This document shows positions 3,301 to 61,800 of a DNA stretch of 64,000 nt, piece by piece. Under the pieces are notes generated by a model that saw only the letters and a program-made list of their open reading frames with translations, had not been told where the DNA came from and made no database searches. The first letter of the stretch is position 1. The number at the start of each line of letters is the position of its first letter. Source of the DNA: Phallusia mammillata (taxonomy: Eukaryota); assembly GCA_965637545.1 (NCBI GenBank), contig OZ281500.1, forward strand, positions 7,192,001 to 7,256,000, given 5' to 3'. Both the position numbers and the translations under genes were made by a program.

Positions 3301-6300
3301 TTTTGCAGGGTATTTGGCTAACATATGGAATGCGACACACGGTGGAAACTATGACCAATTTGCATGCTCAAAGTAATAAACCCATGACCAAAAACGAGGT
3401 ACTTGCACTTTGTCGCATGATGGCGCTGTCAAAGGCTGTAACTGATGGATTTCATAGAGGTTCAATGCTAGCAGCTGAGAGTGGACAACACATTGTGCAG
3501 TTCTTGCAGTACCAGATACTCCTGGTTTTGCAGGCAGCCAAGGTAAAGTTTTGTTACAAATACAACTCTTTGGCCATGGGTTCATAACAACAAAATGTTT
3601 TTGAGTAATGTTGTTGCCTGATAATTATTATTAGGTAGTTGTACAATACTGAACAAAACTATGGCAAAACATGGCATTTTATTACATTTGCCTATGTTGT
3701 GAACTGAAATTGTGACTTGTAATACTTTAAATGGTTAAGTTTTGTATGCCCTGAACGGTCTGTCAGTAATATTGTATGATTCATGCCTACCAAAATTATA
3801 AAAATGGTTGATTCAAGTGCATTGAGATCTTTGGCAAAGTTAGAAATAACCCTGAAGTTCAACATATTAGTTAATGTTATACTTAAGATTATAAACTGAA
3901 TGATAAAAACTTTTAAAGAAAAGAGCAGTGGCTGAAAAGAAATACAGCGATCGGAGGTTGGACATTCTATCTGGTCTTGTTCTTGCAGAATCTTGTGCCA
4001 AGGGTAGTCCAACACTACAGCGCATAGCAGTGGCCAAACTGGCATTATCTGTTGCCAACCAGTCAGTAAGTGCTCCATAACGATCCCTCAAGAAAGTAAA
4101 ATTATCCGATATTTAAATAACAAGCAAGCCAAATATTTTTCTCATAAAGAATTGCATATTTTCTTTGTGTTTTTTTTTTATTATTATTTAACAAACCAGT
4201 TATATTTTTTTGGATAAGGCTTAGGACAGCTCACGTTTTAGTTTAATTTCACAAACAAAAAATACCTTTTAAGTATATTTATATCTGGGATTGGTTTTTA
4301 GAAGACACTTGTTTTCTTGTAGAAAATCATCAGGGATGACGAATACATGGGAATTTTAATGAAGCTAGAAAGACTTCAGATAATCGGTGCATGTGGGGTA
4401 TGGGCTTACTCCAAGCGAGCATCCGACCAATCATCGTTCTACTGGCATCGTTCGCTTTTCACCACATACTTGGACGGCCTGTGTTCTGACCCGAGTGAGG
4501 CTGCCAGGTTATCGGTACGTGAAAATGTTATCTTGTTGTAGTGGTGTATTGTATCGTTGAATATATATATTGAGAATAAAGTAAACCTTGATTAATCCGG
4601 ACCCGTTTGGACCCAAAATTTGACTAGATTATGCGAAGATCCGGATTAACCGATGTCGGTTTAACTGTGGTTTATTGTACTTGCCATTTGGAGGAAATTT
4701 GTAACGCATTGTTCTGAAATTTAACGAAAATAAATAAGTGACATTCGTGTTGTACAACGTTTTTAACAGAAACATTGACACCAATCATGTTATATTTTCA
4801 GACCTGCATTTATCAATATGTCATTTCAAATTTAATATGATTGTGTTTTTTAACAGTATATGTTTGATGTCCTCGAAGACATAACATCTCGACTTTTGCG
4901 TTGTAAGCATCTCGCATCTCCACAACAACTTGTACAGACTTACCGGGATGAAATGAACGGCTACGTCAGGCAAAACTTACTTGACGTGATATGCAAAGGT
5001 AATTAAGTGACAAATTACACAAGTATTCACGCACAACAAAATTAAGTCCTGCTGGTTTAATTTTTTCGTTCAATTCCTTTGCATTTTTAGAAATCGAAAA
5101 CGATCTGCGTTTGTCAGTTCACACGCATCTAAAACTGGATGACCGGAACCCGTTTCGTGTGGGCGTGAAGTCTCTACGTCAACTGCTTGCTATCGAACCA
5201 CTGAAGTTTCAAGGCTCCTTTCTGGATATCAAAGGTGAATTTATGACCAAAAAATGTTTAAACGTTTTTGTGGCAAAAAATGCCAAAAGTACGCACTTGC
5301 GAGAATGAGCCCCATTGAGTTAACACCACAAGGGTGTCACCTGCATTACTGTGCTTCGAACACACCCAGCCGATTGTCACAGGCTAAGCTAAATCGCCTC
5401 TTCGCCTTGTCCGGGGTCACCCCCGAGTGACATCACAGCCGGGTACAGGGGATTACCCCCTGGGTACTCTCTACCCAATTTCCGGGGACTTTCCCCCAAG
5501 TTGCCGAATCGAAATTGCTCAGCGACTTGGAAAGCAGGTCTTCGAAGTGCGCACGTTAGTTAGTATTCTAGGTTGGATTTGTAAGGCTCCGCACGCTGAA
5601 ATTTTCCGTTTGTGGTGCGTGCGCCGATAAGTGCGATTTTGACTTTTCTCCTTACATGCAGCCTATGTGACTCACTACTTGGACCAGACTTTCTACAACC
5701 TGACCACTGTTGCCCTGCACGACTGGAAGACCTATGGCGAAATGAGGAACCTTGCAGCGCAAAAATACCAACTTGAGATGCAGGAGGTAAAATAGCGTTC
5801 AAAACGTTATGTGACAAAACTATGCAAAGCTGATGTTGATAATCCATTCAGAAAAATGCATTACGCATGTTTAACGTTGCGAAAATAAATTACTGAAACT
5901 TTTGCACAAAAAATATGCTGAGGTTTTAACAAAATTACAAACTGAAACTTAAGATAATTACAGGTACATTTACCCAATCAACAACTCGAACAAGGTTTGG
6001 ATGTTCTGGAGATTATGCGAAACATCCACGTATTCGTATCCAAGTATCTCTACAATCTCAACAACCAGGTGCAATACCATACATACATAGATAACATTTC
6101 GTTTCGTTTTGACACATGTTTTCTATTGCAGATATTTGTTGAACGTTCAAGCAACAACAAGCATCTCAACACCATCAACATACGCCACATCGCTAACTCA
6201 ATAAGAACCCATGGGACAGGAATTATGAATACCACTGTAAGTTTACATACAGTATATAGAAGCCAACACGACAGTTACACTAGTTACAACTATCTAATTG

Positions 6301-9300
6301 GTAAGGTACAATACAAACGGTATTTATTTATGTTTTTTTTTTCAGGTCAACTTCACATTCCAGTTCCTGAAGAAGAAATTTTACATCTTTTCACAGTTTC
6401 TATTTGACGAACATATTAAGTCTCGTCTTGTCAAGGTTTGTTGGAAACGACAATATTTCTCTTGCAATAACCAAAATCAAACCGCCCGAACCTCACCATT
6501 CGGAAAAATCTTAATCAAAAAATTTACAGAATTACAAAAGCGTGCAGCCATTGCGTAAAAAGTAAGCTGCATACAGTGCACACTGTTTAACCTGAAAGTC
6601 ATTCTGTACAGATTGTGACAATACATTGGCCGTTTAAGCATCAATCAGGTTTGGTGAGGCATATTTTTAGTATGTTACTTCCAACAAACTAAAGTGCCGC
6701 AGGTTAACTACGTGTTACACGGCCAATGTTTTTCCTTTAGCTACACTGGTGAGAACTTACAGGTCAAAACAGTGTGTAATGTATGCATTTAATTTTTTTC
6801 AGTTTTCGAAGCGTGACTTTATTAAATCAATTTTTCGCGCGATTGTAGTTGATACATTTTGGTTTGATAAGCAAATGTTGCTTGTAGGACATCCGGGACT
6901 TTCGCGAAAACAGAGAATCTCTCAACCAGCTTTATCCATACGACCGAGCGGACAAGTTTAACCGGGGAATCCGCAAACTTGGTTTATCAGCGGACGGGAG
7001 CAGTTACCTTGACCAGTTTCGTCTGCTCATCTCTCACATTGGCAAGTGTAACTCAATTTATTGATTTTCTAACACTTGTTGTGATTTGGAACAAGTTAAA
7101 AAAAATAATGTAAAATCAATTTAAATTGTTAAATATGTGACAAATCAACTAATCTTTTTTTCGGTGTGCCAAAAAGTGGGACCTGTATTTGTGTTGTGTA
7201 TAAATTGCTTCGCAAGTGCAGCAGACCTGCTAAAACTTTATAATGACCCAATCGACATTAAGATAGATGGATCTTTGCTAGGGATGGCCCGATAGTACTG
7301 TATCGGCGCCGATACCCGATGCTTCGAGCAGTATCGGTACTCGTCCGATACTTTAGCGGTATCGGTACAAGTACCGATACTTTTTTTGAGACTTTATCAT
7401 GTGTAAAATTGAAAATGAAAGGAGGCAAAAAACAACAACCATCGGCTGTGATAAAATATTTATGGGACTACAACTAAAAAACGCGTTCGTTTTGGATTTA
7501 ATGAAATAAGATGATCTAAATCGCTACAGCGACTTAATGCCGCAACACGTTTTTTAGGCCCGCGTTAATTGCGAGCGAGCGTCAAAACGCACAAAGTTCA
7601 TTGTAGACGTTTGTAAGCATAAGTTTCGAAACGGCAGGTGTTTAATTTGTATGGCCAAGTGTATTTAGACATTCCTAGTGTTATCAGTGACAAATTATTT
7701 TCTACGCCATTAGGTGAACTTTTAAATCCTAATTAAACTACCTGCGATTTTGCAATACAAAAGTTGGCGTTAAGAAATGACCCAAACGTCATATGTTTTG
7801 GGATTCCTTCACTGTTTTGGGGATATTAACAGACAATCCCATTCTCTGCCTAAAGCCATGATCGTTAAATGTTTTTTGTTGTCAAAGTCGTAAAACATTA
7901 ACGCCGTAAGACGTTACAAACAATAGACGCCGGTAAGACGTTGCAAAGCGCGTAGCATAAACGTAATCACGTGATCAGATGCGTAACAACAAGTGCACCG
8001 ATCGTTAGTTATGCCTCCAGTGCACCACCGTCGTTAGGGCATCGTCAGCTCGCCAGCTGATTTGCCAAAGAGTCTTTACCAGACCTGGGCATTTTACGGC
8101 CTTAAGTGATTTATTATAGACTCAGTGTGTTGTTAAATTAACTGTGATGGGAAAACACATTACAAATACATCAGTTTGAAAATGATTTTGCTTGTTTGCA
8201 AAGTATCGGGTATCGGTATCGGATCGCAGTACTTTTGGGGTAAAATATCGGGTATCGGTATCGGTTCAAAATATTGGTATCGGGCCAACCCTAATCTTTG
8301 CTATACCTGGTTAAGACTTTGTGATTCCACAGGTAACGCAATGGGATACATTCGAATGGTGAGATCTGGAGGTCTACATTGCTGTAGCAACGCGATACGC
8401 TTTGTCCCTGACGTGGAAGATATAGTTAACTTCGAAGAGTTGGCCAACGCTGACAATATCAGCCCAGAGGTAAGTTTGTATTTTTTCAAATAACGCAAGG
8501 CTTTTGTTTTGATTTTTATCAAAGAGTTTTGCTAAAGTCAAGTATTTACAACGCAACACTATGGTGTTTCATTTTAGCACCGATTCTTTCTTTTTTCTTT
8601 TTTTTTATTAAGTATTCGCAATTTAAAGTGGAAACATTCATTTGGTGTTGATATGAGAACGTGCATGACAACGTTTTGCGGCTTTTTTATATTTCTCAAA
8701 ACAGCAGTTTTACCGGTCACAATAACTTGCTCATTTGTTTTTAATCAACAACTTTTGTGTTCTTGGCTTGCACAGTGGGGGGCGGATAAACATTTGGTTT
8801 GTTAAAGGCGCCACATGTTTGAAAGTTTATTTATACCTTAAAAAGGTCAAAACACTGCTCTAACTGATACGTTACATACTTTTAACACAGGTGAACTCGG
8901 CCTTTACACACATCGATGCTGTGATTGGGTCACTTGCCAAAAACTCAGCCGAGGGATCAGATTATCTCCGTATGTTGGTTTCAGTTTTTGCTCCAGAATT
9001 CCGTAGCTCGAAAAACATGCATCTGCGCAATTTCTACGTTATAATCCCAGCTTTGGTAAGTGCATTTACAACTGTATAAATGCTGTATAGGCAGATCATG
9101 AACGAATTGACCGATTGTGACCTTTTACAGACTATTAACTTTGTGGAACACGTGATCAGCTGCAAGGAAAAGATGAACAAGAAAAATAAAGTGGGCGCCG
9201 CTTTTACTGACGACGGTTTCGCAATCGGTAAACTTCTAAAAATATCTCATAAACCACCAGTGGTAATCGTATGTATTTTATGGTTTTTGGTAACGAAATG

Positions 9301-10409
9301 AGAAGGCATAGTAAAATAACGAACAGATGGTTACTAGTTAAAAAGCTTCCTGCTGAATTCAATTTTTCTTTTGCAACCAACTAGTAATGTTAACATTGGT
9401 TTTGTTGTATAACACAGCACAATTTTCACGACGAGAAACAAACTAATTGAGATTTTTGGACCCAGGGCTCGCTTATATACTGAAGTTGGTCGACCAGTAC
9501 TCGGAGTTTGACTCCCTTCACTGGTTCCAGAGTGTTCGTAGAAAGTACGAGGCAGATGTGAAATCTCAACAACAACCTGCACAGAAACAAGGGAAGGGTG
9601 CAGAGGACGAGAAACTCCTACAGACCAAAGCACTTGCCCTGAAGCGAATTGGAATATACCAGCGAGTAAGCAACTGACTTAGTTTTCGATTCTGATTTAA
9701 ATGTACACCGATATAATTCGTTGTTTATTTGACAAATTCTTAGTATTCTTAGTTTTCCTTGCCCAGTGGGTCCTAAACTGTCGGGCATGGGCCAAGGGGT
9801 AATTTTTACTTGTAGTAATATATAAAAAATAAGCTGTGATAATTGCGTGTGGCTGTACAACTGTAAAACTTGAAACCACAAAATTAGCTGAAAAATGCCG
9901 AAACCCCTTTCTAAATGCTATTGTTGAACACTCTTTTAAAACTTACGGATTTTTTAGTTATGTTGCTAGTTTGTGCCCCATGCGCAGGCATGTTTTGGTG
10001 CCACATTTATCAAAAGGTGTAAATTTTGTTTTATTTTTCTGATTTCAGGAATTCGATCTTCTCTACTATTCACTGAGCAGCGCTCGGATTTTTTTCCGCG
10101 CCGACCTTACAGCAAAGGAAGAAGCTGAAGAGAAAGGAGGTATGATGCATTTTGTAGATTGCTTAATAGACGTCAGTGATGGAACTATTTTCTAGAGACC
10201 AAAACTTCTTAGTTTCACGTATGCCCTGTATTACTTTAACCTCTATATACGTTTGTACTGTAACGTTTTCAACTTTCTTCACAAGGCAACATATACCCTT
10301 GCAGCCAACTAACGGAAAGATACGTCGTTTTTCAGATAAGAAACCAGACGAAGCAGAAGCGCAATCAGCAACAGATGGCACCACCACTGATCCTCCCCCT
10401 GCCAACTAA
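357..10409 (+). CDS. WASHC4: WASH complex subunit 4 (SWIP/KIAA1033), multi-exon
   Basis: Spliced exons translate to strongly conserved WASHC4 segments: [134 protein letters not shown] at 357, stop TAA at 10407-10409. Confidence 0.95.
4579..4677. mobile_element. Short pogo/Tigger-like MITE remnant
   Basis: Imperfect terminal inverted repeats (aagtaaaccttgattaatccgga ... tccggattaacc...ggtttattg) flanked by TA on both sides. Confidence 0.45.
5289..5554 (-). ncRNA. RMRP: RNase MRP RNA, antisense within a WASHC4 intron
   Basis: Minus strand has CR-I GGGGAAAGTCCCCGG, a P8 hairpin TGGGTA-GAGAG-TACCCA with the MRP-specific GARAR loop, CR-IV AGTAATGCAGG and CR-V GGGGCTCATTCTC. 10-bp P1 (GTGCGCACTT/AAGTGCGTAC), P2 (ACCTGC/GCAGGT) and P3 (CCAAGT/ACTTGG) pair. 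Length about 266 nt, like vertebrate RMRP, and immediately followed by TTTT. Confidence 0.92.
5577..5618 (-). promoter_or_regulatory. Putative type-3 Pol III promoter of the MRP RNA gene
   Basis: TATA-like TTACAAAT at about -30 to -23 and PSE-like GCACCACAAACGGAAAAT at about -64 to -47 relative to the inferred start at 5554. Positions fit; match to consensus is loose. Confidence 0.45.
6574..6781. mobile_element. Tc1/mariner-type MITE
   Basis: Imperfect TIRs of about 25 bp (cagtgcacactgtttaacctgaaagt / acttacaggtcaaaacagtgtgtaatg), an inner inverted pair cattggccgt/acggccaatg, and TA on both flanks. Confidence 0.6.
7279..8293 (+). mobile_element. Non-autonomous hAT element (TAGGG...CCCTA family)
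   Basis: TIRs tagggatggcccgata / tatcgggccaacccta, perfect 8-bp TSD atctttgc (7271-7278, 8294-8301), subterminal GATAC/GTATC repeats. Confidence 0.9.
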
Positions 10410-10828
10410 ATTAACACCGCTCGCCACCGCTGATTTTGCAAGTGATGATTTTAATGCAGTTTAATAATGACTTGCCATGGTTCTTTGATTCTCGTGTTGA
10501 GCTGAAATGTTGTGTTACATCCATTGTTTTTCAATTGTTTGTTTGATTTTCTTTCAAGTGCAATCTTCGTTTTATTACTTTATTACTCGCAGCTGTGTAT
10601 TCACATTTCTGAATATAAATTACATCACGAACCATGTGACTCAGCATATTTTACTCACATCCACTTGAAAGTATTTTAGCAACGTCACCTCGTCATGGTT
10701 GAATGCCTACGCCGGTGGTGTGTGTTTTGTTTTCTTGAAGCCAGCAGGATTTAAAAAGTAAAAGTAAGCAATGTGTATTTGAGTCAGTTTTACCTAATTG
10801 AGGGGAGAAAATGATGGACTGATTGACG

Positions 10829-13800
10829 ATGTCGAATTTTGAGGAGAGATGCCTTCCCAAATGCACGTTCGTGGGATGCGTTGATAACTTGAACTCTGTC
10901 ATTTTAAGAGGAACATTGCATCAAGTGAAAGGTTCGAGTCCACATGTAGTGCATTAGGTTTTGTTTGACTTTGCACAAATTTAGGTACAACTAGTTATGT
11001 ATGTCACGTTGCAATTTGTTAAAAATGGTAGCCATTTTATCACAAAAATGACAGGAGTGAGGAATCAGATGGCCATAAAGTTTCCAATACATTTATCTTT
11101 GTGTAGATTAAGTGGAGTTATTTTTTGTTGAATTATGATAAAACCCATTCTGTTGAAGGGCTGTTGCATATTAGGGTTAACTGTATTTAACAAGTAAAAG
11201 TAACACAAAATCTGAAATAACTCTGAAAGCACAAAGATTTTTTATAGAATAAAAATGTGAAGAGCCTAATTGCTGTTTAAATGCTAACAGCAACAGTGTT
11301 TTTTGAAGTTAAGTGAATGGTATACCAGGGCTTGGCATTCTAATGTATGGTTTTCTGCCAAAAAGTAACACAGCCTAATGTTTTTGTGATGTTTGTAGAG
11401 TATGTGCGCAGTCATTGTATCAATGCTCTTTACCGCCAAGACAGCAATGGACGTACACCGCTTCATGTAACTGCCTCCTGTGGGAAGGCAGACATATTAC
11501 ATTGGTTGTTGGAGCAAGCTAAGGAGTCACCTTCCACTTTCAATGTGAATTGTAAGGATGTTGAATCTGGATGGACTGCTCTGCACCGAGCTGTGTACTT
11601 TGGAAGGGTTGGGTGTGTGGTTGCTCTATTGCAGGTACTACCACTGAGATATCATAATCAAGTTTAAATGACAAGTATCCTATTTGTAAAACTGTAATCT
11701 TTGTTTCTGGATGGATTATCTTCAAAGTACCAAGTTATTTATGCATCCAATTTATGACTTACTTTTCTTTTAAACCTAAATCTTAAAGTATTGTTTGCCA
11801 TTTACAATGCCAGTCTCGTTTTTTTGATTAAATAATTACTGCAGTAATAATTCTTGTTTATAAATACATCTATTTTACGTTTTTAATATGTTACTTTTTT
11901 GTTTTTTCAAGAATGGTGCTTCAATGTGGATCAAAGACAAAGATGGATGTAATATTCTGACATTTATGACCAATGATGTGGCACCTTGGGTGAATAAGCC
12001 TAATGTAAATAGGAATAGCAATATTAGCATCAAGAAGTAAGTGTCAAATTTCACTTGTGAACTGTTTATAATATTGAATTATTGTCTGTTTATATATAGC
12101 TGTGCTGAATAATGGCTGCTGCAGTGGTTCCCAACCTTTTTCGTCCTGTGCACCCTTTTAGTCGATATTCAAATCTAATTCCCCGCCTACATTATACGAT
12201 AATACAATAACTTTCTTTTTCTCAGCTCATATATGGCAAATGCAGCAATAACACATAGCAAAGACAACCAGAAAGTGTTTTATATTGTGACACAAATTTC
12301 CCCCTGGTTGGGAACCTCTGGGCTGTTGCAACTGCTGTTGGCGTAAATTGGTTGTTTTTGCTAATTAGTGTTGTATGCTTTATTTTTTGCAGTTGGAATG
12401 ACCTTCGTAAATCAGATTCCACTGACTTATACACATGGGGTGTAAATGAAAATATGACTCTTGCTCATGAAAGTCAAAAGAGCAGAAAATTACCGGAAGT
12501 TGTTGAATGTTTTGCCAGAAAGAAAATATCAATTGCACAGGTAAAAAATATCAATTGCTCTTACAGTACAAACCCCCAAGAATTGTCTATTTGTGCATTC
12601 ACTAAAGCCCTGACTTTTATTAGTGCCATAATACAAACACGAGATGCATTGAATCAGCTAAATTAGGTTTGGACCAAAACCAAATATTTATCAGTTTTTT
12701 AATCACAAACATTACTGCCAAGGTAGTGGTGTACATAGAATACATCGTTCAGAAGTTTCACAATCTCTGTTGGCATCATCACTGACGTCTGAACGATGTA
12801 TGCTATATACACCACTACCTTGGCAGTAATGTTTGTGATTAAATTACTTTTCAAGTCCGTGTATAGTGTTCCTAAGTACCAGTTTTTTTATTCAACACTA
12901 GTTAATACAATCTTAGTTATTATGCAGTCAGGTTCTTTGGTGTGCATTTAAATAAAAAAAAAAACATTTTTCACTTTAAAGTTGTGTTTGTAAAAGATTC
13001 AATTTCCATTGAATCATTAGGATTTATTCCGCCGACAAAATTTGACAAACCAAAGTTTCAGTACATCAAATACACGGTACAAATACCCAATCCGAGATAT
13101 TTTAAAGTGGTCTTTAAACCAAGTTCTGATGGTGCTTCACTGCTTTGAGTGGGCATATCTATTTAGTATTATACTGTCATATTTCTGTTTTTACCAGGTT
13201 GTGCTATGCAAGTTCCACTCATTATTTCTCACACATGAGGGTGTTGTTTATACCTGTGGCAACGGGAGAGGTGGAAGACTTGGCACTGGACAAGAAGACA
13301 CTTTTATACATCCTCAAAAAACTGAAGGCCTTACAAATATAAAAGTTATCAACATATCTGCATCTGTTGATCACTCTGTGTTTGTGGCTGAAGATGGCCA
13401 GGTTTGTAACTGTAAGTTTCTTTAAGATGCAAAACAGCTTTAAATCAAAACTATAATTTAGGTGTTTGTTTGTGGAATGAACCATTGTCGAGTGTTGGGG
13501 CTCAATCCACCTCCACCTAAGGTTTTGATCCCCACTAAAGTTACCACTCTCCGCGACAATCACATTATTGGCTGTAGTGTAGGCTGTTATCACACTGTGG
13601 TGTGGACACCAACATCTCTTTACACATTTGGAACCAATGCAGGACAATTAGGTAATTCTTTTTCAAGCTTTAAGTAAACTTTTCTGTTGTCAAACATTTT
13701 TCTTTGTTTTCTTTAAGCAGGGGAAAATGTAAAGAATAACTAATGTTTTTTCCTAGGTCATGCAAAAGGCGATACCTTTATTATTACACCCCGCCAAGTA

Positions 13801-16800
13801 TCTGGTGTGTACAAAGAAGACAGCAAGATATTGTCTGTGCATTCAAGTGATGCTGCCACTGTTGTTGCAACTTCCCAGGTAACTATTTTCACCCAAGAAC
13901 ACCATTCCTGATTGGGAACATACAAATATTTTTTGCAGGGATCAGTGTATGTCTTGCATGAGTTTGTTGTTCGCAAAATTGTGTCAAAGCACATGGATAT
14001 TGAAAAACTGCAAGTCGGAGGTGGTTTGCTGGATAAGACTGTTGTGGGTCAGGTAGATAATGGTGCTATATTTGGATGTATTTATTTTGTGAATACATAT
14101 AAAGGCTATTTAATGTCAATTTTGTGTTGTTATCCAATCAGGTAAAATTGACATTCTCTGGTAACAAACTTGTAAAAGACGATCATCAACAAAGAGATGA
14201 CAGAGAATGTCGTGTACTGATTTTAAAAAAGTCAGGTGATTTAATATCATGGTCATCTTCACATGCAAGCATTGACAGATGTCAGTTTGGTATAAAACAG
14301 GTAATGATCAGAGCAGTAGCCCAAATTTGCAATAGCATAAATCCTAATTCTGTTAGTGCTGTCAAAAAATGTAGTATTTTCGCAAGAAATACTAAGACCA
14401 TTTAAATTTTCATTTGGAACCACCTGTATTAAATTAGATGAATTCTTCTTAAGTTAGACTCATTTTGCAGGTGCATTGGATAAGTGATATTGTTATGAGT
14501 AGTCGGGGCAGCAATGTGTTGTTTGTCTCTGTTGATGGAACAGCTTACATCGGACAGTATTCTGCTTGGCATCCTGGAAAGTCAAAGAAAAACCAGTCAC
14601 TCCACAAACAGGTTAACTTTTACTGTCTCTGCTTTAAGCATTAATTTGTGCAGTTTAAATACAACATGCATGAATTTTTTTGTTTACATTTTTAGGAATT
14701 TGCAAACAGCTTGGAACTATTGGAAGCAGATTCATCACAAACATTTAACTTGGAGCAAGTTCCTTGTGCCTTCCGCACTCATTCTGCAGTGTTGGGACCC
14801 AAAGGAAGAAACACTGCCATTCTTCAATCAGACCCACGGAATTTTGTTACCAATGTAAGCCACTATATCAGGGGCGGGCAACTTCTCCAGTCGGCGGGCC
14901 TGATATGGGAAAATGAAGTACTTGGCGGGCCGGATTCGTGAAACGATACACTAATCGCGTATTTATCCAGTGATTTAAAACGGATTTTTGACCACCTAAA
15001 CTAAATACAATCAAGAACGTCGCAATTACAATACAGTCCAAACAATCTAACTGATATAACATAAAATTATTCACCACAGCAAATTTAATGCATATACCAC
15101 AGACTTGGATACTGCTGAAACACTAACCACACTACATGTGTGGAAACAAAGGAAACCGTGAAAGCAGGCCACGCACAAGGTTGGCAGTTATGTCGTAACA
15201 ATGGACGTATGGTGCAATGGTAACAACGGCGGGAAAGTTTTTCTGTTATTGGGGAGCGTTACTGTTTGTTACAACTATAATTTGACGTAGTAAGCAAGTA
15301 GTGGGGGATTCGGCAGACTGTGGCCGCGGGCCACGTTATCATGTAAGACCAGAAACTGTCTGCGGGCCGCTCAAAATCCCGTCCGTATGTTGCCCGCCCC
15401 TGCACTATATGTTAAGATTCAGCAGTAACCATTATGTAACCCATTTATGTTGAACTTTTTTGGTTTTGTCTAGGTTCCATTTGTGACTGCAAGTGAACTA
15501 TCAGAACATCTTGGTGCTTTGCTTAAAGATGCAAATGATCGTGACATCCTTCATGACATAATCATCAGAGTAAAAAGAAAAGATAAACCAGATGTTACAT
15601 ATCCTGCTCATTCTTACATTCTTGCATCTCGCTCATCACTTTTTTACAAACTCCTATTATCAGAAGTCACCTCTGGTGAAGATTGTGGTGAAATTGTCAT
15701 TGAGAATGTGTACCCTAAAATTGCAAAGAACCTGTTGCAGTTAATATATACTGGCACATGTGAAATGCTACAAAGCAATCAGCAGTTCAATGAGGAGTTG
15801 GTTGAGCTTGGATTGTGCAAAGTTTACTGCGGAACAAATGAGAAATGCTTTGATGGTGATATCACCTCAACCAAATTTGGTAAAAAGGAAGAAAATTCGA
15901 AAGTAAACAGCATTACCCTGCTTAGAAATGTTGCTGTCAAGCTTGGTATCTTTGGTATCAAAGAAACTGTTGACAAACTTGTTGTACATGATGGGAAAAT
16001 TGTCAAAACTGCCAGTTTGCCTTCATTTACATTGAACAGAATGTTGCATCCTAATTTGTTTGACTGTGTCATCGAATGTGATGATGGTCAAACATTTCAA
16101 GCACACAGGTGTGTTTTGTGTGCTAGAGCACCATTCTTTCAAGGCATGCTCCTTTCTCCATGGATGGAATCCTCAAACATGAAAATTGGTGAATGTGCTC
16201 ACTTGAAGGTAAAATATGTATTGACAACATTGCTATATAACTTTATGCAAAAATGCATTACATTAAAATGTCAGTTCTTTTGTATTGTGTCACAAGTAGA
16301 AGTGAGTTGTGCGACATTTGCAATTTATACAGGTTCCGGTGCCATCTGATGTTTTTCGCTTTGTGCTTGACTTTGCTTACACTGATTCACCCACTTCACT
16401 TCATGGGGCCACATCAATTGAAAGTCTTTGTGAAATACTGGCTTCTGCGGACTTGCTGTTAATGGACAGACTGAAACAAGTTGCTGAAGTGCAAGTAAGT
16501 TCCTAGGGATAGACCAAATCTAAAAATGTTCTGTTTGGTCGAGCACCGAGCATCTCATGTGAATACTCGGCCGAGTACCACCATCTCATGTGAATACTCG
16601 GCCGAGTATCACCATCGGTGTATTAAGCTGTACAGGCTACAAAAGTATTTTCCTCCATCTAACACATTTAAAAAACAGTCATTTTTGTTCTTGATACCCT
16701 TTTGAACACTAGTTTCACATCTTAGCAGGGCATGAATATGCAATTTAATGCTTGGGTCAGTTTGTGCAACTGCTCAGCCGAGCACTGAGCATCAAAAACA

Positions 16801-18793
16801 GCAATGTTCAGTACAGAGTACTCAGGTTCAGGCTCGCCTTGGCTCGGCCCATCCCATTTAGTTACCAATTTTTTGACAACTCCCACACACAAAAAGTAAA
16901 AATAACATTGTTTTGCACACAGATTGTTCCACTTTTGACTTTGAAAAATGTAGTTTCCGTTAGTGAAGTTGCTGAAGCGTTTAACAGCAAACAATTATAC
17001 AATTCATGCCTGCAATTCGCTTGTCAAAACTTGCCAGCACTTTTATGCACACCATCTTTCCATTCTGCTGACCCAGAGGTGTTTGATGAACTTGAAAACA
17101 TATACAGGTGGGATTTGACTTGTCTACCAATTGCAAACACATAGTTACAACCTTGAAGAATTTAAATTTGCCCCAAGTTTACCTACTTTGTGATTAGGAT
17201 CACTTTGTAAAACGATTTGTTTTCATGTTTGAGTGTTCTGCTAAAGTTTTCCTATATTGCTTGGCTTTTTGTATTCCATATTAAAATCTTTCAGTGGAAT
17301 TAATTAGCTTTGGTGGTCCTGCAAAAAATTGTTGACTTTTTTGAAGGTCGAATATCCCAGATGTGTACACAAGGGTTATAGCTTCAACGAGTGATGTTCC
17401 CAGGATTGACCACATCCCTCGGTATCCTACAGATGGGGATGTACATGATTCTTCTGATGAGAGAAAGATAAAGGTACAGCATAACACCTCACCGAGTCGT
17501 AGAAAGCCCAGTCTGAGCAGTGGACCATCGAAGGGTAAAAGAAACAAAAAATTTGGAGTCCTTCTTTCAGACTTGTTATACAAGGAACCAAAATATGCAG
17601 AGGATGAAATTTTAGAAAAAATGTTGGCAACCTCTGATGAACCAACGCAAGATGATGGAAGTGCTGTAGTAGTGGAGAGTAATAAACAAGCCACTCTTGA
17701 AAGGCCGAAAGCATTAAAAACTGAAGTAAAAACAACACTGAACACAACTGAACCTAATTCTTCTGCCAAAGCAAAAAAGGTTGAATCTGTGTCAAGTTGG
17801 TTGCCAAACAGTAATGCTAAAATTTTGAACAAAGACCCGAATCAATCCTATTCAACCAATGACTTTCCATCACTTGCAAATATCAAACAAAATGGATCAT
17901 CAAACATGAACAAAGGTAGCTCAGGCCATCCTGTGCATGGAAAGACAAAAAAGTTGTCACAAAAGGAAAGGCGCCGCTTAAGAGAGCAGGAGAACACAGC
18001 ACATGTCACTGAACCTGTTTCTCCACCTGTAAAACCAGTCACAAATGCATGGGGAATTCCTATGAGGTGATTTTTAAGGGTTACCTGAATTTCTACGAAA
18101 TCTTATCATTTTTTGTTTTTGTCGACTCATGCCACATTTAAAGATTGTTCAAATACCTTATTTTGTGAATGTAGATCACCAAAGCAAACTACAGCCATAT
18201 GGGATGTCCCAGATGCAACAAAGACTTTTTTACCACCATCCCCTATCAAGTCACCAGATATAAAGTTCTCTCCATCAGGGTACGTGGAAACACCGTTTTA
18301 AATTTTTTTGAAAAAATGAACTATTTCTGTGCTTTACTCATTTATTAACTGTATCGAACATTTTTTAACTGTTGACAATTTTATTATAGCCCATGGCAAC
18401 AAATTCAGCTGGAAGCACGAATTTCACCACCATATGAAAATCCAGCACAAAGTGGACAAACAATGAGTTCAAGTTACGTGGAACATTCACCTTCCTTTAT
18501 CGATATTGTGGAAAGTGAACAACTATGTCATGAGAGAGCTGAAAAAACTAGCAAAAAGCCACTTGTTTTGATTCAGGTTAGATTTCAATCATCATTTCAA
18601 TTTGCAACTGTATTTAAATTAAGCACCTAATGCTTCCATGTTTTAGTTGGAAGATGAAGCTATGGATCAATTGAAAAAGCATTACCAACACTCCAGAAAG
18701 GGTGTTAAAAATGACAAACGGTTCTTTACTGTGACCAGAGTTCCTGACCACCAAGCACTCAGTTTTTCTAAAGAACGAAAGCAAAGCTCATGA
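10829..18793 (+). CDS. IBTK: Inhibitor of Bruton tyrosine kinase homologue (ankyrin-RCC1-BTB), multi-exon
   Basis: First exon MSNFEERCLPKC... spliced to ankyrin repeats (GRTPLHVTASCG, DVESGWTALHRAVYFG), RCC1 repeats (LYTWGVNENMTLAH, VYTCGNGRGGRLG, LYTFGTNAGQLG), two BTB segments (YPAHSYILASRS, FQAHRCVLCARAPFF) and a C-terminal KKLSQKERRR region. Stop TGA at 18791-18793. Confidence 0.9.
12122..12320. mobile_element. hAT (Charlie-like) MITE
   Basis: TIRs cagtggttcccaacc / ggttgggaacctctg; TSD ggctgctg / ggctgttg (7 of 8 match). Confidence 0.8.
12698..12843. repeat. Near-perfect palindrome (foldback/MITE-like) in an IBTK intron
   Basis: 56-bp arms (12698-12753 and 12788-12843) with 2 mismatches around a 34-nt loop; TTAA near both ends. 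Confidence 0.9.
14869..15402. mobile_element. hAT MITE
   Basis: TIRs caggggcgggcaac / gttgcccgcccctg; perfect 8-bp TSD cactatat (14861-14868, 15403-15410). Confidence 0.9.
16504..16857. mobile_element. hAT MITE, same family as 52233-52576
   Basis: Starts tagggatagacc and shares long internal sequence with 52233-52576 (atgttctgtttggtcga..., tcagtttgtgcaactgctc). Degenerate TSD taagttcc / ttagttac. Confidence 0.7.
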
Positions 18794-34800: not shown

Positions 34801-37800
34801 AATAAATGAGGAAGAAAGACTTCTCGAGTTCGATGAAAGTTCATTCCCAATACTGCAAGCAATGTTCCAGTTCAAGCAACCATACGACAGTTTGTGGAAC
34901 ACAGCGTTGAATTGGAACACCAAGAACGAAATGTGGTTGAATGGTAAACGTTTAGCACATGACGTTTTAGCACATGACGTTTTTTATACATGTACATATA
35001 TAAGTTACAATACATGTATATATTTTTTCTGTTAAAATAGAAAGTCAAATTCATCAGTAAACATGGGGCCTATACTGAAACATGCTTGTTTCTTGGTGTT
35101 AATTTAGACACTTCAAGAATTTTTAGACAATTTGGGCAATAAATTTGGGGCTTAATAAAAGGTCAATTGCAATGGGTCAAATGGTGTCAAAGATTATTTT
35201 GTTTTCATAAATATATGGAAACACCCTTGAATTCACGTACGGGGCGTCCTACCACCGACCTCTTGATTACATTGAAATAAAATGCACATATTTTTAAGGT
35301 ATCTAAATCTCTGTGTGCAGGACCGTTTCAGAATCTTAACTCAGAAGATCTCGCTGAAGAGTTGGGTCAGATGTGGAGAACAGTTTACAAACTGACCAAG
35401 TCGTTTTCGGACGCGGCAGGTCCACGACGTATAGCTGAGTCAGTTCGCTCCAAAATCGACAAATTCAAACAGCATCTTCCCATCCTTACAACTATATGTA
35501 ATCCAGGCATCAAAGACCGACATTGGGAACAGGTTAGTTGAGTAGCACCTCGTCAAAAAGTCCGTTTCTGACGCTAAGTTTTACGATGCACCGGTTGTGT
35601 TGTGACGCGTATCTTAGGCTACATTAGGCGTTTCTGTCCGTTTGTGGCAACTTTTGTTATGCAGGTGACTTATATATGTCAAGTTATGGGTAATTGGAAT
35701 TCTCTTCTGTTTGCAGATAAGCGACATCGTTGGATTCGACATCAAACCAGAAGCCGACACGTCATTGCTGAATATGCTGGAGTTTGGTCTCAACAAATAC
35801 ATTGACGAGTAGGTTTGAATTTTGTATTCTGTGGTGCTGTGAATTTTGTGTTTTAAAAACATAAGCCTAACCTTACCCGAACACACTTACAAACGCTTTG
35901 TTTGGAAAAATAAATATTTTGTGTTTTAAAAACAAAAACTAACCCTTACCCGAACACACTTACAAACGCTTTGTTTGGAAAAATAAATAGTATCATTTTT
36001 AAAAGAAAATATATGTTGAATGAAATTTAATTTGAATTTAATTTAAAGAAGCTGTCTTTATGACCAAAAAACAAGCAAAGGCAACTTGTTGTGCGTTTGT
36101 ACGTTTTTTTGTATAATTTTTTTGTTGGTGTTTTGTTTGCTTTTGATAACGGTTTGTTGTTTATCTAATAACTAACACTAACAGCATGGAACGAATCGGT
36201 GTAAACGCTGGAAAGGAATTCGGCCTGGAGAAAAGCCTCGCCAAGATGAAAAACGAATGGGCAGAAGTCTCTTTCACCCTGCTTGAGTACAGGGACACGG
36301 TAACCCAAACATTTTGTGTGGCTAATGAAGTGTGACTAAATGTATTTTGTCGTATGCATGTTTGCTCTGAGTGGATTTGTGTGTTGTGAATATTGCGTCG
36401 TTTAGATTTCCTTTTGTTTAAAGCTTGTAGTAGGCTGCAACTAAATCGAAACGTTTGTTACCGCAATTATGGACCTAGGGTTGCATGTTGTTAAAGTATG
36501 AAAAGCAAACGCCTTATGACACTTTTGGTTAGCATGCCTGTCCATTCTAAAGCTAATTCGTCCCTCTTTGCGAGCTATTGAAGCAAAATCGTTTCAAAAC
36601 ATAAACATTCCACCAGCACAAAAATTATAAGCCACCTACTTGTTGCAGAGGTTAAATCGATAAATTTATGCCTCCTTTTATGATGAGCCACCGGTTTTTG
36701 CAGCATCGAGGCGATCGGCGCTCGGGCCAGCAAAGAATGGTCGCTTGAGAACGCTCTCCATAAAATGAAAACTGAATGGAGTGAGATGGACCTTATAATG
36801 GTTCCATACCGTGACACCGTAAGATATGTGTGGTGGAGTGTGCCACTAAGTTGTGTGGTGGAGTGTGCCACTAACCCCTAACACAAAGTTGACAAATATA
36901 ATTTCAATTGGTGATTTAATGGTGACTGGGTGGGAAAGGGTGTTAGGTGTAACTTGGAATGTTGCATGAGTGAAAGTTTATTTGGTATTAACTTGCGGTT
37001 TTGTAAAATTGTGGTGTTTTGAGTTGAGTGTTATTGGCAGAAAAAATTGTGGTGATGTTTTATTTTTTTTCCATTTTTATTTATTTTTTCACCATTTTCA
37101 AATCGTGCCAATTTATATGCTAACTATTGTATTTATTACTGTTTATGCAGAAATATGCTATTATTTATTGTACACAAAACATTTTAAATGGTTTTAATAA
37201 GACCAGAACGTTATTTTGTTTTAACACTTAACAAACTACAACTAGCTGATCAGAAAACCAAACATTCATGAGAAACAGAGAAAAAAACAGCATTAGGAAG
37301 TAAAGGTCCCAAACAAGAGTAAAGATGGCAGTAAAAACGTAGAGCAGAACAAAGACAAGCTAAAGATATAGTAGAACATAGTTTAACCAAAACAGCCGAA
37401 TATCAGTGTTCAATATGCAGGACATCTTTATCCTTGGTTCAGTGGATGAGCTGCAGATTTTGTTGGACGATCACATAGTAAAGTGTCAGACTATGAGAGG
37501 ATCTCCGTACATTGGACCTTTTCAGGAGGAGTTTTCGGTGAGGATAAACGCAGTTATACAGCAGTGATAGAAAATTAAGGAGGTTGCATTGAGTTGTGGT
37601 TGTCAAGTTTTGTGTCAGATTGGTCGGTTTTCGTCCACGAAGTTTTTGTTTTATTGGTGTTGAGGTAAATGCGTATTTTTTGGAGAATTAAGGTTTTCTT
37701 TGCAAAGTCGTGAGAGCAGATAAAACACTGTCGAGATTGTTTTGGTTTCAGGTTTTAGAAAGTAATGTCGTTTGTTTCAAGAAAAAGTTACACTTGATAA

Positions 37801-40800
37801 AGCTGTGTTCAGGTCTCATTGCTATTGTAGTTACTGGGCCAGTGTTGTCTTGAGTTGTATTGAGATTTAACTGTTTTGGTGTATTGTATTGGAAATTAAC
37901 TATAGGTTTTTACGAAAGTTTTACAGCTTTAATTGTTGTGGTTTACTTAGCTTTGTTTTCTTAAATATGTTTTGAAGTAGATTTTTTACATTTTGCTGGT
38001 AAACTCATGCCTTTGTCACTTTTGCTCTACTGATCGTCGTTGTTTTGTTGATGCGCCTTGTTTTAATTCTTCAAACTGGTGGCATTTAGGGTCTAAGTAT
38101 TCTTGCGTCGATTGATGACATTCAAGCATTGCTGGACGATCACATCGTTAAGGCGCAGACCATGAAAGGTTCGCCTTTTATTGGTCCCATCGAAACCGAG
38201 TCAAAGGTTTGTATTGTAGTGTTGCAGTGTGAAACATTTCTTCTCGTTGTAAGTCTTATACCAGTACACAAGCATCTAAACTTCGGGTTTATTGTTGGTA
38301 CATTGAAATAGCACACATGGTCATTGAATTGGCATTGGTTTGCCTCGTTTGGTACAGTATGTACGTTATCGCAAAAAAGTACGCTGACCTTTAAACTCTG
38401 CAATGTTTGTTAAAATTTGTGTTCAACACGAAGTAAAATATTTTCGAAAACTTTCTTATTGTTGTGAACATTGGACTTGAACAGGTAAGTGTTAAACGCG
38501 ATAACATATTAAAATTGTCTATCTTTTAACTTGCATTGAAAGATTTTTTCCTTGTCTTAGGAATGGGAAGAGAAGCTGATTCTGATGCAAGACATTCTTG
38601 ATGCCTGGTTAAAATGTCAAGCTACTTGGCTTTACCTTGAGCCGATCTTCAGCTCAGAGGACATCTTGGCTCAGATGCCTGCTGAGGGTCGCAAGTTCGG
38701 CATTGTGGATTCCACATGGAGAGATATCATGGTTGAAGCTGTAAGTTATTGTAAAAGTGTCAGAATTTTTATCCCGCATAAACAATTATACAACTAATGG
38801 AGCATTTAACAATATGCACAAATAAAACAACTTATGCATTTTACTTAAACAGTTGCACAAAACACTAGGTTTATTACGAACCAATTCTATTAAATTTGAA
38901 GATGGCTAAATTGTATACTAGCGTAATCGCATTTTGGGCATAATTGGCAAATCTAAATGAACCAATTTGCAAGTGTTTTTTTTTCCAATATGAAGATTCT
39001 TTTCACATTAGATCCTTGTACCGTACTTTTTTCCGACTAATTTGATGAAATGACTAATTTATTTGCAGGTCAAAGACCCTAAAGTGTTGGTGGCAACAGC
39101 TCAACACAACATGTTGGGAAGACTACAGGAGGCAAACGATCTTCTCGATCAGATTCAGAAGGGACTAAACGATTACCTAGAGAAGAAGCGACTTTTCTTT
39201 CCAAGGTAACAACATTTTTTGCATTTATCTCAAGCAGAATAGATCATTTTTGTACTCTAAAATATTTTCGGCAGTTTAGTGCATTGTGCCCGAGTTACCC
39301 AACACTTTGGGTATATATTTGGGTATCTTTGTATGTTAGGTGGTTTGAACAAATCTTTCAAATAAACCTTGTGATTACAAGAAGAACTACATTTTATATT
39401 TTACTAAGAAGCCTCGGCCAATTCGAAAAGGTGCTAATCTCGTTTTATCACAAACGTCTTTTTTAGATTTTTCTTTTTGTCCAACGATGAGTTGCTGGAG
39501 ATTCTGTCAGAAACCAAAGATCCACTGAGAGTTCAACCTCACCTAAAGAAATGCTTCGAAGGAATCAACAAACTCAAGTTCACTGAGCAAATGGAAATTG
39601 TCGGAATGATCAGCTCTGAAGGCGAAACCGTTCCATACGGCCACAAAATTTATCCCGCCAAAGCCAAGGTTTGCTGAATCAAAACTATCAAATTGCCAAC
39701 AAAGTGTTTGCTAATCAGGCCAAACATTTGTTCAACAATTTCGCAAGGCTTGATTTGGCCCAAATCGTATATTTCAGCTAATCGTTATGTTATAATTCAT
39801 GAATATAAATCGAATAGCTCTTGTCATGCAATTGTTGCCTTTGTTTGAGCCGTTGGACTTAATAATGCTAGAATTTAGTGGACCTAATCTGTTTGACTGC
39901 GGTACAAACACACTGTATCATAAATATATATATACATCAGTTTTATCTATTGAATCCTGTAATGCTTTCGAAAACCTGTTTGCTTGCCAGAATTTGTAAC
40001 TTTTTTCAGGTTTATGTATTTGCCATATATTTAGACTTGCACAAAATCCAGCATGCGACCATTTTTAATTTACTTACATAGACACACGAGTTTTAACAGG
40101 GTATGGTGGAGAAATGGCTACTGGAAGTGGAAGCGAGCATGATTACAAGCATAAAGCAAGTTATGTTCAAATCGTTCAAAGGTTATGCCGAGACCCACCG
40201 CAAAAAGTGGGTGTTGGACTGGCCCGGGCAAATTGTCTTGTGTGTATCGCAAACTTATTGGACTTCTGAAGTAACCGAAGCGATTGAGGAAGGGTCGCTA
40301 GCGGTAAGTTAACATGTTTTCAGTTTACTGCAAGCATTCTACTAAACCTGTACGGTAGTGAAATAAGGTAGACAGTACAATATTTCGTTTTTGGTTGTAT
40401 TAAATAGTGTAAAAACAGGCCTTGAAGGTAAAAAGTTGCGAAGTCCGGGTGAGTTATGTGTGCAATGTCTTGTAAATTAAAAAAAATAGTTCTTGTGATT
40501 AGTTGCAAATATTATTTACCCTTACTGAATATTATAGTGTCGTATATACAACACGCAACCTCGTTTACCTGCCTTTACAGGTTAATTAAAGTATAGACAA
40601 TACTAACTTGAACGTTTCTTTTCAGGACTACCTGAAGCAGCTGAACTCGCAAATTAACGACATCGTCGATTTAGTGCGAGGCAAACTTGACAAGGGAGCG
40701 CGAATCACTCTTGGCGCACTCACAGTACTCGATGTACACGGTAAGTTGATCTCCAAAAAAATCCTTATGGTCTCAATCTATATTGTGCGACTATTATGTG

Positions 40801-58800: not shown

Positions 58801-61800
58801 AAAGGGCAATTTTCAGTTCTCGGACTGCCGCCTGAGTGTCAAAAAATACAATAAAACAAAAAAATTAATAATATATCAAAAATTAATAAAAATATATCAA
58901 ATTAGTTCTTTATACTGGTATTTTTTTGTCAAAAATTGGCGTAAAAATCGCAAATGTCTTTACTGGTTGCAACTCATTAGCGAGCAAACGCTGCCATAGA
59001 AAATTGCCCTTTCTTCTAATTTAAAATAGTTTCAGTAAAAACGAATGTATTTCGTAAAAAAATCGTTAAGAATTCATCCGAATTTGAACTACTTTCAAAT
59101 CTCTTGTCAAGGCATTGTTGGACTCACTGCTAACATTTATCTTTAAAACACAGGAACGGTAGCCTACCTTGGTCCGTTTACTGTCGACTTCCGTAACGAT
59201 TGTGTTACAAAGTGGCAGGACGCCTTCAAGGTTGAAGAAATTCCTTGCTCCCAGAACTTCCAGCTTGCCAATACACTCGGCGATCCAGTGCAAATTCGTG
59301 ATTGGACAATTGCCGGCTTGCCCGTCGATTCATTTTCAATTGACAACGGTGTGTACTAATTGCTTACATGTCATTTTTCATACAATGGGTTGGGGCACAA
59401 ATAGTTTTCAAAAGCCTTTAATTCAAATCCAGTGCAAATTCGTGATTGGACAATTGCCGGCTTGCCCGTCGATTCATTTTCAATTGACAACGGTGTGTAC
59501 TAATTGCTTACATGTCATTTTTCATACAATGGGTTGGGGCACAAATAGTTTTCAAAAGCCTTTAATTCAAATTTTTATGTATGGGTAGTAGCAGCAGAAA
59601 TTAGTAATGTTGTATTATAATCTTGTCACATATTAATGTAGTAGTGGATACCAATGTGTATTATATAAATTCTTTCTTATCCTGATCTGTAGTAACTATA
59701 TCCCATACAGTAGTGGTATATACATGTTGTAAACAGTGCTGCAATAAAGAAGAGTTTATGCCAACGCCTTTTGCGAAGACCACCTTCTACTGACAAAATA
59801 TATGTTGTCCATTAGGGTAGCTATAGCTCTATTAAATTTGGGGGGATATTTTCCTGTTGCGAACGTATTAAACCAGAAACATTTAGTTTTCTTCTTCGCC
59901 TTGTTTCGCAATGAATATAATTTTCATTGCTTTTGTTCATCAGGAATTGTTGTCAACAATTCGCGACGTTGGCCACTGATGATCGATCCACAAGGTCAAG
60001 CAAACAAGTGGATTAAGAACATGGAGAAAGAAAACAAACTGGCTGTCCTGAAACTTTCCGATCCAACCTACATTCGATCTTTGGAGAATTCCATCCAATT
60101 TGGCTACCCCGTCCTCTTGGAGAACTTAGGTAAGTAAAAGCATATTTAAGTTTGCATGTAAAGTATGGCGGCCGCAGTGTTAAGAAATGATCTGTAGACT
60201 AAATAAAAGTCGGAATGTTGATAAATCATGTCCACAAAAAAGACAAAGCGTTTGTTAAATCATCAAGTTTTATTTAAATATGTTAGTTGTATTGCCTGTT
60301 TATTGTTTTCAGAGCCGTGGAAAGTGTGCCTAAGTAAACATTTGTTTATGGTTAATTTACAGAGACGGTAAAAAATTACCTTATGAAGACTTAATGTTAT
60401 TCTTTCTGGTTGTAGGTGAGGAATTGGATGCTATCCTGGAGACGGTTCTTCTTAAGCAGACCTACAAACAGCAAGGAGTCGAATATATCAAGCTCGGTGA
60501 CAACATCATTGAGTACTCGCGTGACTTCCGCTTCTATATGACAACCAGTCTCAGAAATCCCCACTATCTTCCTGAGATATCGGTCAAGGTAATTGCTACC
60601 CAAATGTATTTTTTATTGGTATATAATGCCATACGAATAGGCTAAATATCTTTCTATTGTGTGTCCTTTAAATTCTGAGTACAAAAACAATGGTGGATCA
60701 AATTTGTTTGGCGTACTGGTTGTTACAACAGATGATAAGATATTTTATCCAATTTGTGCACAGCCAAAGCCTACATTTTTAGAACGATTTTGTTATAGTT
60801 GCTTACACATATACTGGTGTGGTTTAAAGGTTTGTCGTTTTTTCCTCACAGGTCTGTCTGGTGAACTTTATGATCACTCCCTTGGGATTACAAGATCAGC
60901 TTCTCGGTATCGTCGCAGCCAAAGAAAAACCTGAGCTTGAGCAGAAGAAGAACGAACTGATCTTAGAGGGAGCAGAAAACAAAAGGCAGTTGAAAACCAT
61001 CGAGGATAAAATCCTGAAGGTATTTTTTCCAATCCCACAACTTGACACGTTTTACTTGTGTTAAAGGACAAATAAGTGAATATGGCCTGACCAATGGATT
61101 TAGTTTTGATATTTATTGGCGACAAATGATTTAGGTACTATCCTCGTCAGAAGGCAACATCCTAGAAGATGAAACAGCAATTCAGATCCTCTCATCGTCC
61201 AAGACTCTTTCAGAGGAAATCTCTGCCAAACAGGAAATTGCTTCGGAGGTTAGTAGGGACGAATGTATAAAAATTACCACTTCACAGAATTTTAAATTGT
61301 ACAATCAAACCTTTGCAACTTTGTCTTTGTTTTGCTTTAGACTGAACGTCAGATCGATGAGACAAGGAACGGATACAAACCGGTGTCAGTCCACTCAGCT
61401 GTTTTGTTCTTCTGCATTTGTGATTTGGCAAACATCGAACCGATGTATCAGTACTCACTTGCTTGGTTTATCAATCTCTACCTGATGGTTGGTTTGTTAC
61501 ATACTTTGTTCACCAAGTGGTATGTCATGTAATAACATACAATAACCTATTAAGCAGATATAGGCGGGCAATCACAACAGGCGGACAATTACAGCTCGCT
61601 TCTTTCATGTTACTTAAGTCCTACCTTCGAATTGTATAAGTTTGATACAAAATTAGTAAACGGATGTTGCTCTTAACGAACCTATTCTAAACACCATAAA
61701 ATTTCAAACAGTTAGAGGCAAACTAGGCCAAAGAGGTTTGTAGATAAGGAAAGTATTTTCTATCATTTTTTTACAAATCAATTGGCATAATCTAAAATCA

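Follow-up and report, generated by a model that had tools for sequence, protein, structure and literature searches.

Two adjacent pairs of alternative exons in the linker of a predicted DNAH3 dynein heavy chain from Phallusia mammillata

The dynein gene and its paired exons

The window analysed here, a stretch of 64,000 nucleotides (nt) from Phallusia mammillata (contig OZ281500.1, positions 7,192,001 to 7,256,000 of the forward strand) without N characters, carries a dynein heavy-chain gene in which two successive exons of the linker, the lever arm of the motor, are each present in two copies. From ~26.0 kb up to the end of the window, about 65 exon-like blocks align to DNAH3 proteins and dynein heavy chains, and matches to the Pfam families DHC_N2 and AAA_6 complete a dynein heavy-chain architecture on one strand.

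Several comparisons support the assignment of this gene as a DNAH3 orthologue, as made in the original prediction. The exons that flank the paired exons share, in turn, 62-75%, 55-73% and 82-87% identity with DNAH3 proteins and 38-54%, 30-52% and 67-76% with DNAH7 proteins, and are thus nearer to DNAH3. Their ten best matches include every DNAH3-named protein of the set (from a nemertean, a lamprey, amphibians, a bird and molluscs), the others being unnamed models, one of them with only a UniRef EF-hand label; DNAH7-named proteins score clearly lower. The best matches in the PDB are bovine and human DNAH3/DNAH7 chains, and the doubled segment aligns to residues 991-1066 of human DNAH3 (structure 8J07), which is the heavy chain of the single-headed inner-arm dynein c (IDAc) (PMC10266980). 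When the stalk exon was searched against a representative protein library, the full-length matches were distant and the annotated protein of the species itself or of a sister species was not recovered; of these matches only the fungal DNAH7-like protein P0087 was of use, as a stepping stone.

The four exons lie between two constitutive exons in the order A1-A2-B1-B2. The features of the cluster, all on the + strand, are:

35717..35808, +: upstream constitutive exon, 92 nt, ends in phase 2, donor GA/gtaggt
36168..36184, +: acceptor region of A1, no pyrimidine tract; two motifs resembling branch sites, ACTAAC, begin at -14 and -8
36185..36299, +: exon A1, 115 nt, phase 2 to 0, faster-evolving, ancestral KEF/LEK motif kept
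36704..36818, +: exon A2, 115 nt, phase 2 to 0, slower-evolving, changed to KEW and LEN, both fixed in the lineage
36827..36874, +: tandem repeat after A2, 25-nt x 1.9, GU-rich core plus ACTAA, starts 9 nt past the A2 donor
37421..37537, +: exon B1, 117 nt, phase 0 to 0, faster-evolving, C-terminal GPFxE(E/D)F(S/T) signature
38090..38206, +: exon B2, 117 nt, phase 0 to 0, slow-evolving and most similar to single-copy DNAH3
38561..38740, +: downstream constitutive exon, 180 nt, phase 0, carries on the helix begun in B

All four paired exons have AG acceptors and GT donors and, on reading and translating the sequence, contain no stop in the frame of the gene; the A exons are read in frame +1, their first base completing a split codon, and the B exons in frame 0. 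The coordinates, lengths, phases, GT-AG flanks and stop-free status originally predicted for them proved exact. A1 and A2 are 55% identical in nucleotides and ~52% in amino acids, B1 and B2 62% and 64%, and the two members of each pair fall, as proposed, on the same part of the 403-position linker profile DHC_N2 in Pfam (positions 132/133-169 for A1/A2 and 171/172-207 for B1/B2, with E-values from 3e-7 to 3e-9). Homology between neighbouring exons, length, frame, freedom from stops and splice sites are therefore all as the definition of mutually exclusive exons asks. The introns between paired exons range from 404 nt (A pair) to 552 nt. In the local introns only 4.9% of 38-codon windows are stop-free, and this frequency together with the recurrence of the exons in other genomes excludes that the four are open by chance.

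We conclude that the two neighbouring pairs of alternative exons, conserved since ancient times, are a real and well-supported finding, and we suggest that in the DNAH3 orthologue they probably constitute mutually exclusive exons, arranged as two adjacent clusters of two members each. In this scheme, (i) each mRNA would take one A and one B exon, (ii) A2 and B1, like A1 and B2, would be spliced into mRNA, (iii) the choice of exon would be regulated, (iv) several versions of the motor could probably be built from the exon pairs that have been kept, and (v) the variants would tune the docking of the linker or its contacts with axonemal regulators.

Conservation, constraint and origin of the exon pairs

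The cluster recurs in other genomes. A search with the stop-free stretch around A2 gave two short genomic open reading frames (ORFs) of other species, whose contigs are L001, from an ENA assembly, and L002, a 6-kb Logan contig; a scan with the A2 alignment found L005 and L006, metagenome contigs that represent one genome in two samples. L001 has the layout of the window, with the upstream exons, A1, A2, B1, B2 and the downstream exon, the complete A1-A2-B1-B2 cluster is present in L005/L006, and L002 contains A1 and A2 and ends after A2. The exons that L001, L002 and L005 each hold are 115 or 117 nt long with AG and GT at their borders, and the B2 donor is non-consensus in the three of three genomes holding B2. 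The neighbouring constitutive exons are conserved as well, with 83-90% amino acid identity in the other genomes for the upstream exon (35717-35808) and 92-93% in L001 and L005 for the downstream exon (38561-38740). The search for the cluster in related genomes that the original prediction had called for was thus positive, and the decay of A1 and B1 in relatives that was to speak against it was not seen: both are intact, splice sites included, in every relative found to hold them.

The same recurrence bears on whether the extra copies were made by the assembly, through collapse or duplication of haplotypes or through a misjoin, an artefact that the original prediction had also named as a refutation. 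We consider this alternative negligible, since the copies are just 55-62% identical in their DNA, the four-exon layout recurs in independent assemblies of other species, and Logan contigs of two DNA runs (X2 and X3) span 35960-39700 in one piece with zero differences from the window. X2 and X3 hold 99% of the words of the stretch, and one of them may be the source sample of the assembly.

Between-genome comparisons pooled for each exon gave proportions of nonsynonymous (pN) and synonymous (pS) differences of 0.29 and 0.78 for A1, 0.15 and 0.77 for A2 and 0.22 and 0.83 for B1; pN was 0.06 for B2 and 0.06-0.14 for the flanking constitutive exons. The substitution test proposed for each exon thus found pN below pS in all four. 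Synonymous differences between the four genomes amount to 0.65-1.0 and are saturated (pooled pS 0.77-0.90), and no alignment of introns between the genomes was possible. Because synonymous sites are saturated, introns are unalignable and stop-free windows are rare in the introns, all four exons are under selection on their protein sequence. Constraint on A2 and B2 is about that on the constitutive exons. A1 and B1 are more relaxed or more adaptive, evolving faster than A2 and B2; judged from the sequences, A2 and B2 are near the ancestral state and A1 and B1 are more derived.

In trees of the 38- and 39-residue segments the copies cluster by position and not by species, with clade supports of 96/92 for A2, 98/95 for B1 and 99/98 for B2, and with A1 of the window and A1 of L001 grouped at 87/85. 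Signature residues follow the same lines: KEW and LEN occur in all A2 copies, KE(Y/F/H) and LEK in A1 and in all other dyneins examined, and the B1 copies have DE(I/L)Q and a GPFxE(E/D)F(S/T) end in common.

In DNAH3 of the nemertean Tubulanus (locus L003) and of the mollusc Aplysia (locus L004) the A and the B exon are each single, and one A plus one B of the window rebuilds this single-copy sequence, in agreement with the original prediction. No doubled A or B segment was found among ~120 annotated DNAH3/DNAH7 proteins, with the exception of two artefactual models. These are the DNAH7-like models P0154 (Heliothis virescens) and P0155 (Mythimna separata), which contain 2 and 11 copies of the linker segment; we considered them as analogous exon clusters and rejected them, as their copies are identical and point to assembly or annotation artefacts. 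Given the single A and B exons of nemertean and mollusc DNAH3 and the lack of doubling in the ~120 proteins, the duplications are specific to the lineage of the window, and they are old within it. The AABB order, found in three genomes, together with the position-wise orthology of the copies supports two separate single-exon duplications, which took place before at least four deeply diverged genomes split from their ancestor, and not one block duplication, which is the history that had been proposed.

Two further sets of loci were compared. The metagenome loci L007-L012, which have LENAL in the A segment, were set aside as a different, more distant dynein; they show ~44% identity in the upstream exon and single A and B segments, and in L008 and L009 these two segments abut directly, without an intron. 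In the DNAH3 genes of Tubulanus and Aplysia (L003:4643-5007 and L004:19494-20143) no intron corresponds to that at 38207-38560 of the window: the B exon reads straight on through the first 19 residues of the segment that comes next, and a different intron interrupts the gene after ...EWLKV.

Transcripts and control of the exon choice

RNA evidence comes from the single RNA assembly found to hold part of the stretch (run X1), at a word depth of ~3 and in contigs, which drop rare variants. In one contig 35532 is joined to 35717, and a further contig consists of 36205-36298 (A1), 38089-38204 (B2) and 38559-38603, spliced directly in that order with GT..AG ends. This contig shows that A1 is expressed and joined to B2, and that A2 and B1 can both be bypassed in one transcript. 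This rules out the exclusive use of A2+B2, the outcome that had been named as a refutation of the original prediction. Set against the criteria for mutually exclusive exons in PMC5740500, the structural features are all present and the junctions are half there. The X1 contig with the two upstream exons stops at 35808, the last base of the exon, and the next contig starts 20 nt inside A1; we rejected the interpretation of this stop as a branch of the assembly graph with two downstream partners, as low depth or unspliced reads fit equally well.

Several observations weigh against two clusters of mutually exclusive exons: (i) no junction of A2 or B1 was seen in the one low-depth RNA assembly, X1, (ii) a search of the protein collection for translated fragments returned only two genomic ORFs for A2 and none for B1, (iii) mRNAs with B1 and B2 joined, or with no B exon, are computed to stay open, which leaves exclusivity of the B pair unproven, (iv) A1 of L002 is not placed in the segment tree, and (v) the age of the cluster can be given as older than synonymous saturation and no more finely. 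The fragment search detects only proteins of 0.55-1.75 times the query length and says nothing on expression; because of this narrow visible range its blanks are weak.

These observations raise the alternative that A1+B2 is the one productive combination and that A2 and/or B1 are non-productive decoys or relics, or that B1 is a cassette exon used together with B2. In favor of this alternative, the RNA junctions are limited to those between the two upstream exons, from A1 to B2 and from B2 to the downstream exon, and B1 and B2 can stand together in frame. However, A2 and B1 keep their length, frame, splice sites and amino acids, with pN of 0.15 and 0.22 against pS of ~0.8, and carry lineage-fixed signature residues, whereas a decoy would require no constraint at the protein level. 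For a cassette B1, a 39-residue duplication of a strand and a helix inside the linker fold is structurally implausible, and the annotated DNAH3/DNAH7 proteins, apart from the two artefactual models, contain no such duplication. We therefore regard a single productive combination as very improbable and favor mutually exclusive use of both pairs.

For the A pair, exclusivity is enforced by the reading frame. Each of the four A+B combinations is computed to give an open frame, joining A1 to A2 leads to a stop 14 codons into A2, and omission of both A exons leads to a premature stop; because of these stops, joint inclusion and joint skipping fall out of the productive pool. Steric hindrance is excluded as the basis of A exclusivity by the 404-nt intron, and with 404-552 nt between paired exons it plays no part in either cluster. 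For the B pair, exclusivity most likely rests on protein folding, because in a structural model described below the B exon is embedded in secondary structure. No conserved intronic element was found around B1 or B2.

How the choice between A1 and A2 might be made is suggested by the A1 acceptor, at which ACTAAC or CTAAC lies within 25 nt of the AG in four of four genomes, doubled in three of them, and without a pyrimidine tract; in the window, CTAAC occurs within 30 nt of only 2 of 61 acceptor-like sites of the gene. The sequence motif thus suggests protein-mediated regulation. QKI-type STAR proteins compete with SF1 for ACUAAC, repressing exons from upstream and promoting them from downstream positions (PMC13004596), and such a protein (of the QKI/HOW/ASD-2 type) competing with SF1 at the ACUAAC branch sites of A1 could set the A1/A2 choice, with A1 repressed at these sites and A2 promoted via the ACUAA repeats downstream of A2. 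This switch would be a mechanism inside mutually exclusive splicing and not a replacement for it. It is favored by the presence of the motif at A1 in all four genomes against its rarity at other acceptor-like sites of the gene, and by a GU-rich repeat with ACTAA that in both the window and L001, whose introns cannot otherwise be aligned, starts 9-10 nt past the A2 donor; L001 has ~8 copies of the related unit, from 10 nt past the donor. On the other hand, the motif may be no more than a strong branch point in compensation for the absent pyrimidine tract, the element after A2 is conserved in two of four genomes, being weak in L005 and missing from L002, its motif in L001 is ACUAAA and not ACUAAY, and nothing similar is present around B1 or B2; the argument is one of motif resemblance. 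On balance, a STAR switch is possible and somewhat unlikely.

The closest parallel to this arrangement is exon 11 of RAI14, in which QKI and SF1 compete at tandem ACUAAC branch sites (PMC13004596). As in RAI14, a doubled ACUAAC stands just upstream of the exon and ACUAA elements lie downstream of an alternative exon, in keeping with the published positional code; unlike in RAI14, where the motifs lie 34-43 nt from the acceptor, those of A1 are 8-23 nt away, and the likeness is one of motifs.

Alternatively, competing RNA structures of the docking-site/selector type could pick the A exon if 36604-36621, in the intron between A1 and A2, had two alternative partners, one being 36111-36159, which precedes A1, and the other the repeat that follows A2. 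Switches of this type are known from Dscam exon 6 and 14-3-3 zeta. In the window, 36604-36621 forms 15 bp with one bulge with each repeat unit (-23.3 kcal/mol), 36581-36630 pairs with 36111-36159 at -36.3 kcal/mol, and the duplexes overlap and would thus be mutually exclusive. However, 6 of 100 and 10 of 200 dinucleotide shuffles reach the observed energy, L001 and L002 have no equivalent pairing (z -0.6 to +1.4), and GU-rich repeats pair promiscuously. We consequently rejected this three-site pairing model, which came from an inverted-repeat search and RNAduplex, as lying within the range of shuffles and lacking a counterpart in L001 and L002, and hold an RNA-structure switch to be very improbable. 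An Rfam scan of 35300-39000 detected no known RNA family in the introns.

The intron between the upstream exon and A1 also contains a 73-nt x 2 tandem repeat (94% matches) at 35843-35989, the second copy of which has ACTAAC (35938) where the homologous site of the first copy has ACTAAA. This repeat was not found in the other genomes examined.

Place in the motor, known systems and the rest of the window

The profile of the A/B region maps to ~1446-1522 of human cytoplasmic dynein 1 and to chain positions ~151-226 of the Dictyostelium crystal construct. The start of this construct we take to be approximately the first residue of the minimal motor, which would place the A/B segment an estimated ~125 residues into the motor. 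The segment had been described as the N-terminus of the linker; it begins at position 132 of the 403 of DHC_N2, and this placement was consequently not borne out. While the N-terminal placement is inexact, the accompanying description, of a lever arm docking on the ring, is fair. The linker is built from five subdomains, with a hinge about halfway along, between subdomains 2 and 3, and its distal part swings, touching AAA5/AAA4 post-stroke and AAA2/AAA3 pre-stroke (PMC3469822). By its sequence position, the A/B segment would lie on the distal, moving side of this hinge.

In the AlphaFold (AF2) model of the orthologous Tubulanus linker, which has a predicted local distance difference test score (pLDDT) of 85 and agrees with solved dynein linkers, A covers helix 164-195, which is most of a long helix, and strand 202-205, the first strand of a beta-hairpin, and B covers the second strand (210-213), an 18-residue helix (217-234) and the start of helix 237-277, a helix of 40 residues that runs on into the next exon. 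The exons are thus embedded in secondary structure in this model, another recognized property of mutually exclusive exons. Since the A/B border splits the beta-hairpin, its two strands, one from whichever A is used and one from whichever B, come together in the fold. Axonemal regulators, e.g. DRC3 and the TCTEX dimer of IDAf, touch the linkers of other inner-arm dyneins (PMC10266980), and the variants could equally plausibly act by altering contact with a regulator or by altering docking on the ring.

Mutually exclusive exons are a well-known device, catalogued in human genes (Hatje et al. 2017, PMC5740500), and consecutive clusters of them are known from other genes such as Drosophila Mhc and Dscam, which served as test cases in PMC3228551. 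Among dyneins, a mutually exclusive exon has been described in the Schistosoma mansoni cytoplasmic dynein heavy chain SmDHC1 (Pillmann et al. 2011, PMC3228551), and some dynein heavy-chain genes have alternative splice forms of the motor domain (Kollmar 2016, PMC5100056). The A and B exons resemble the SmDHC1 case in forming tandem-duplicated, equal-length, same-frame exon pairs in a dynein heavy-chain gene that are recognized through homology and conservation of splice sites, and differ from it in that two clusters stand back to back, in an axonemal inner-arm dynein, in the distal linker, and are conserved in four genomes. As in Mhc and Dscam, adjacent independent clusters permit combinatorial isoforms; unlike in these genes, each cluster has two members and a docking/selector RNA structure is unsupported. 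The routes to exclusivity are those of catalogued cases, a frameshift leading to a premature stop for A and, probably, the embedding of the exon in secondary structure for B. Neither for DNAH3 nor for any other inner-arm dynein did we find exons of this kind described, in a search that did not cover all journals.

The wider scenario, in which the two clusters are combinatorial and cell-type-specific, for example distinguishing sperm flagella from epithelial cilia, of which the original prediction had named those of gill or gut, and in which the A pair is under a conserved STAR switch, is putative and we regard it as unlikely. If it were true, up to four versions of the dynein c lever arm would exist, differing in docking on the ring or in contact with regulators, and this would be the first tuning of waveform by alternative splicing inside the motor domain of an axonemal dynein. 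Ciliated cell types are usually thought to tune their beating by the choice of dynein genes and by regulators and not by splicing of the motor. Cell-type-specific variants would also provide natural minimal swaps for probing the part that the distal linker plays in the output and regulation of dynein c.

Irrespective of this scenario, a part of the lever arm that is highly conserved elsewhere appears to exist in interchangeable versions that selection has long kept. The ACUAAC acceptor of A1 offers a simple handle on how the choice is made, and models of giant dynein genes in this lineage may under-report isoforms unless tandem exon copies are searched for.

Outside the A/B cluster, the dynein gene contains a perfect 144-bp x 2.0 tandem duplication at 59283-59572 (100% matches). 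Its unit comprises the 3' end of a dynein exon, the donor and ~70 nt of intron, and the exon end and donor recur 144 nt downstream; the duplication either arose very recently, is polymorphic or reflects an assembly stutter. In ORF translations read by eye alone, two further genes precede the dynein gene on the + strand, at ~400-18300. The one at ~11.3-18.1 kb has ankyrin, RCC1-like and BTB-like stretches and resembles IBtk.

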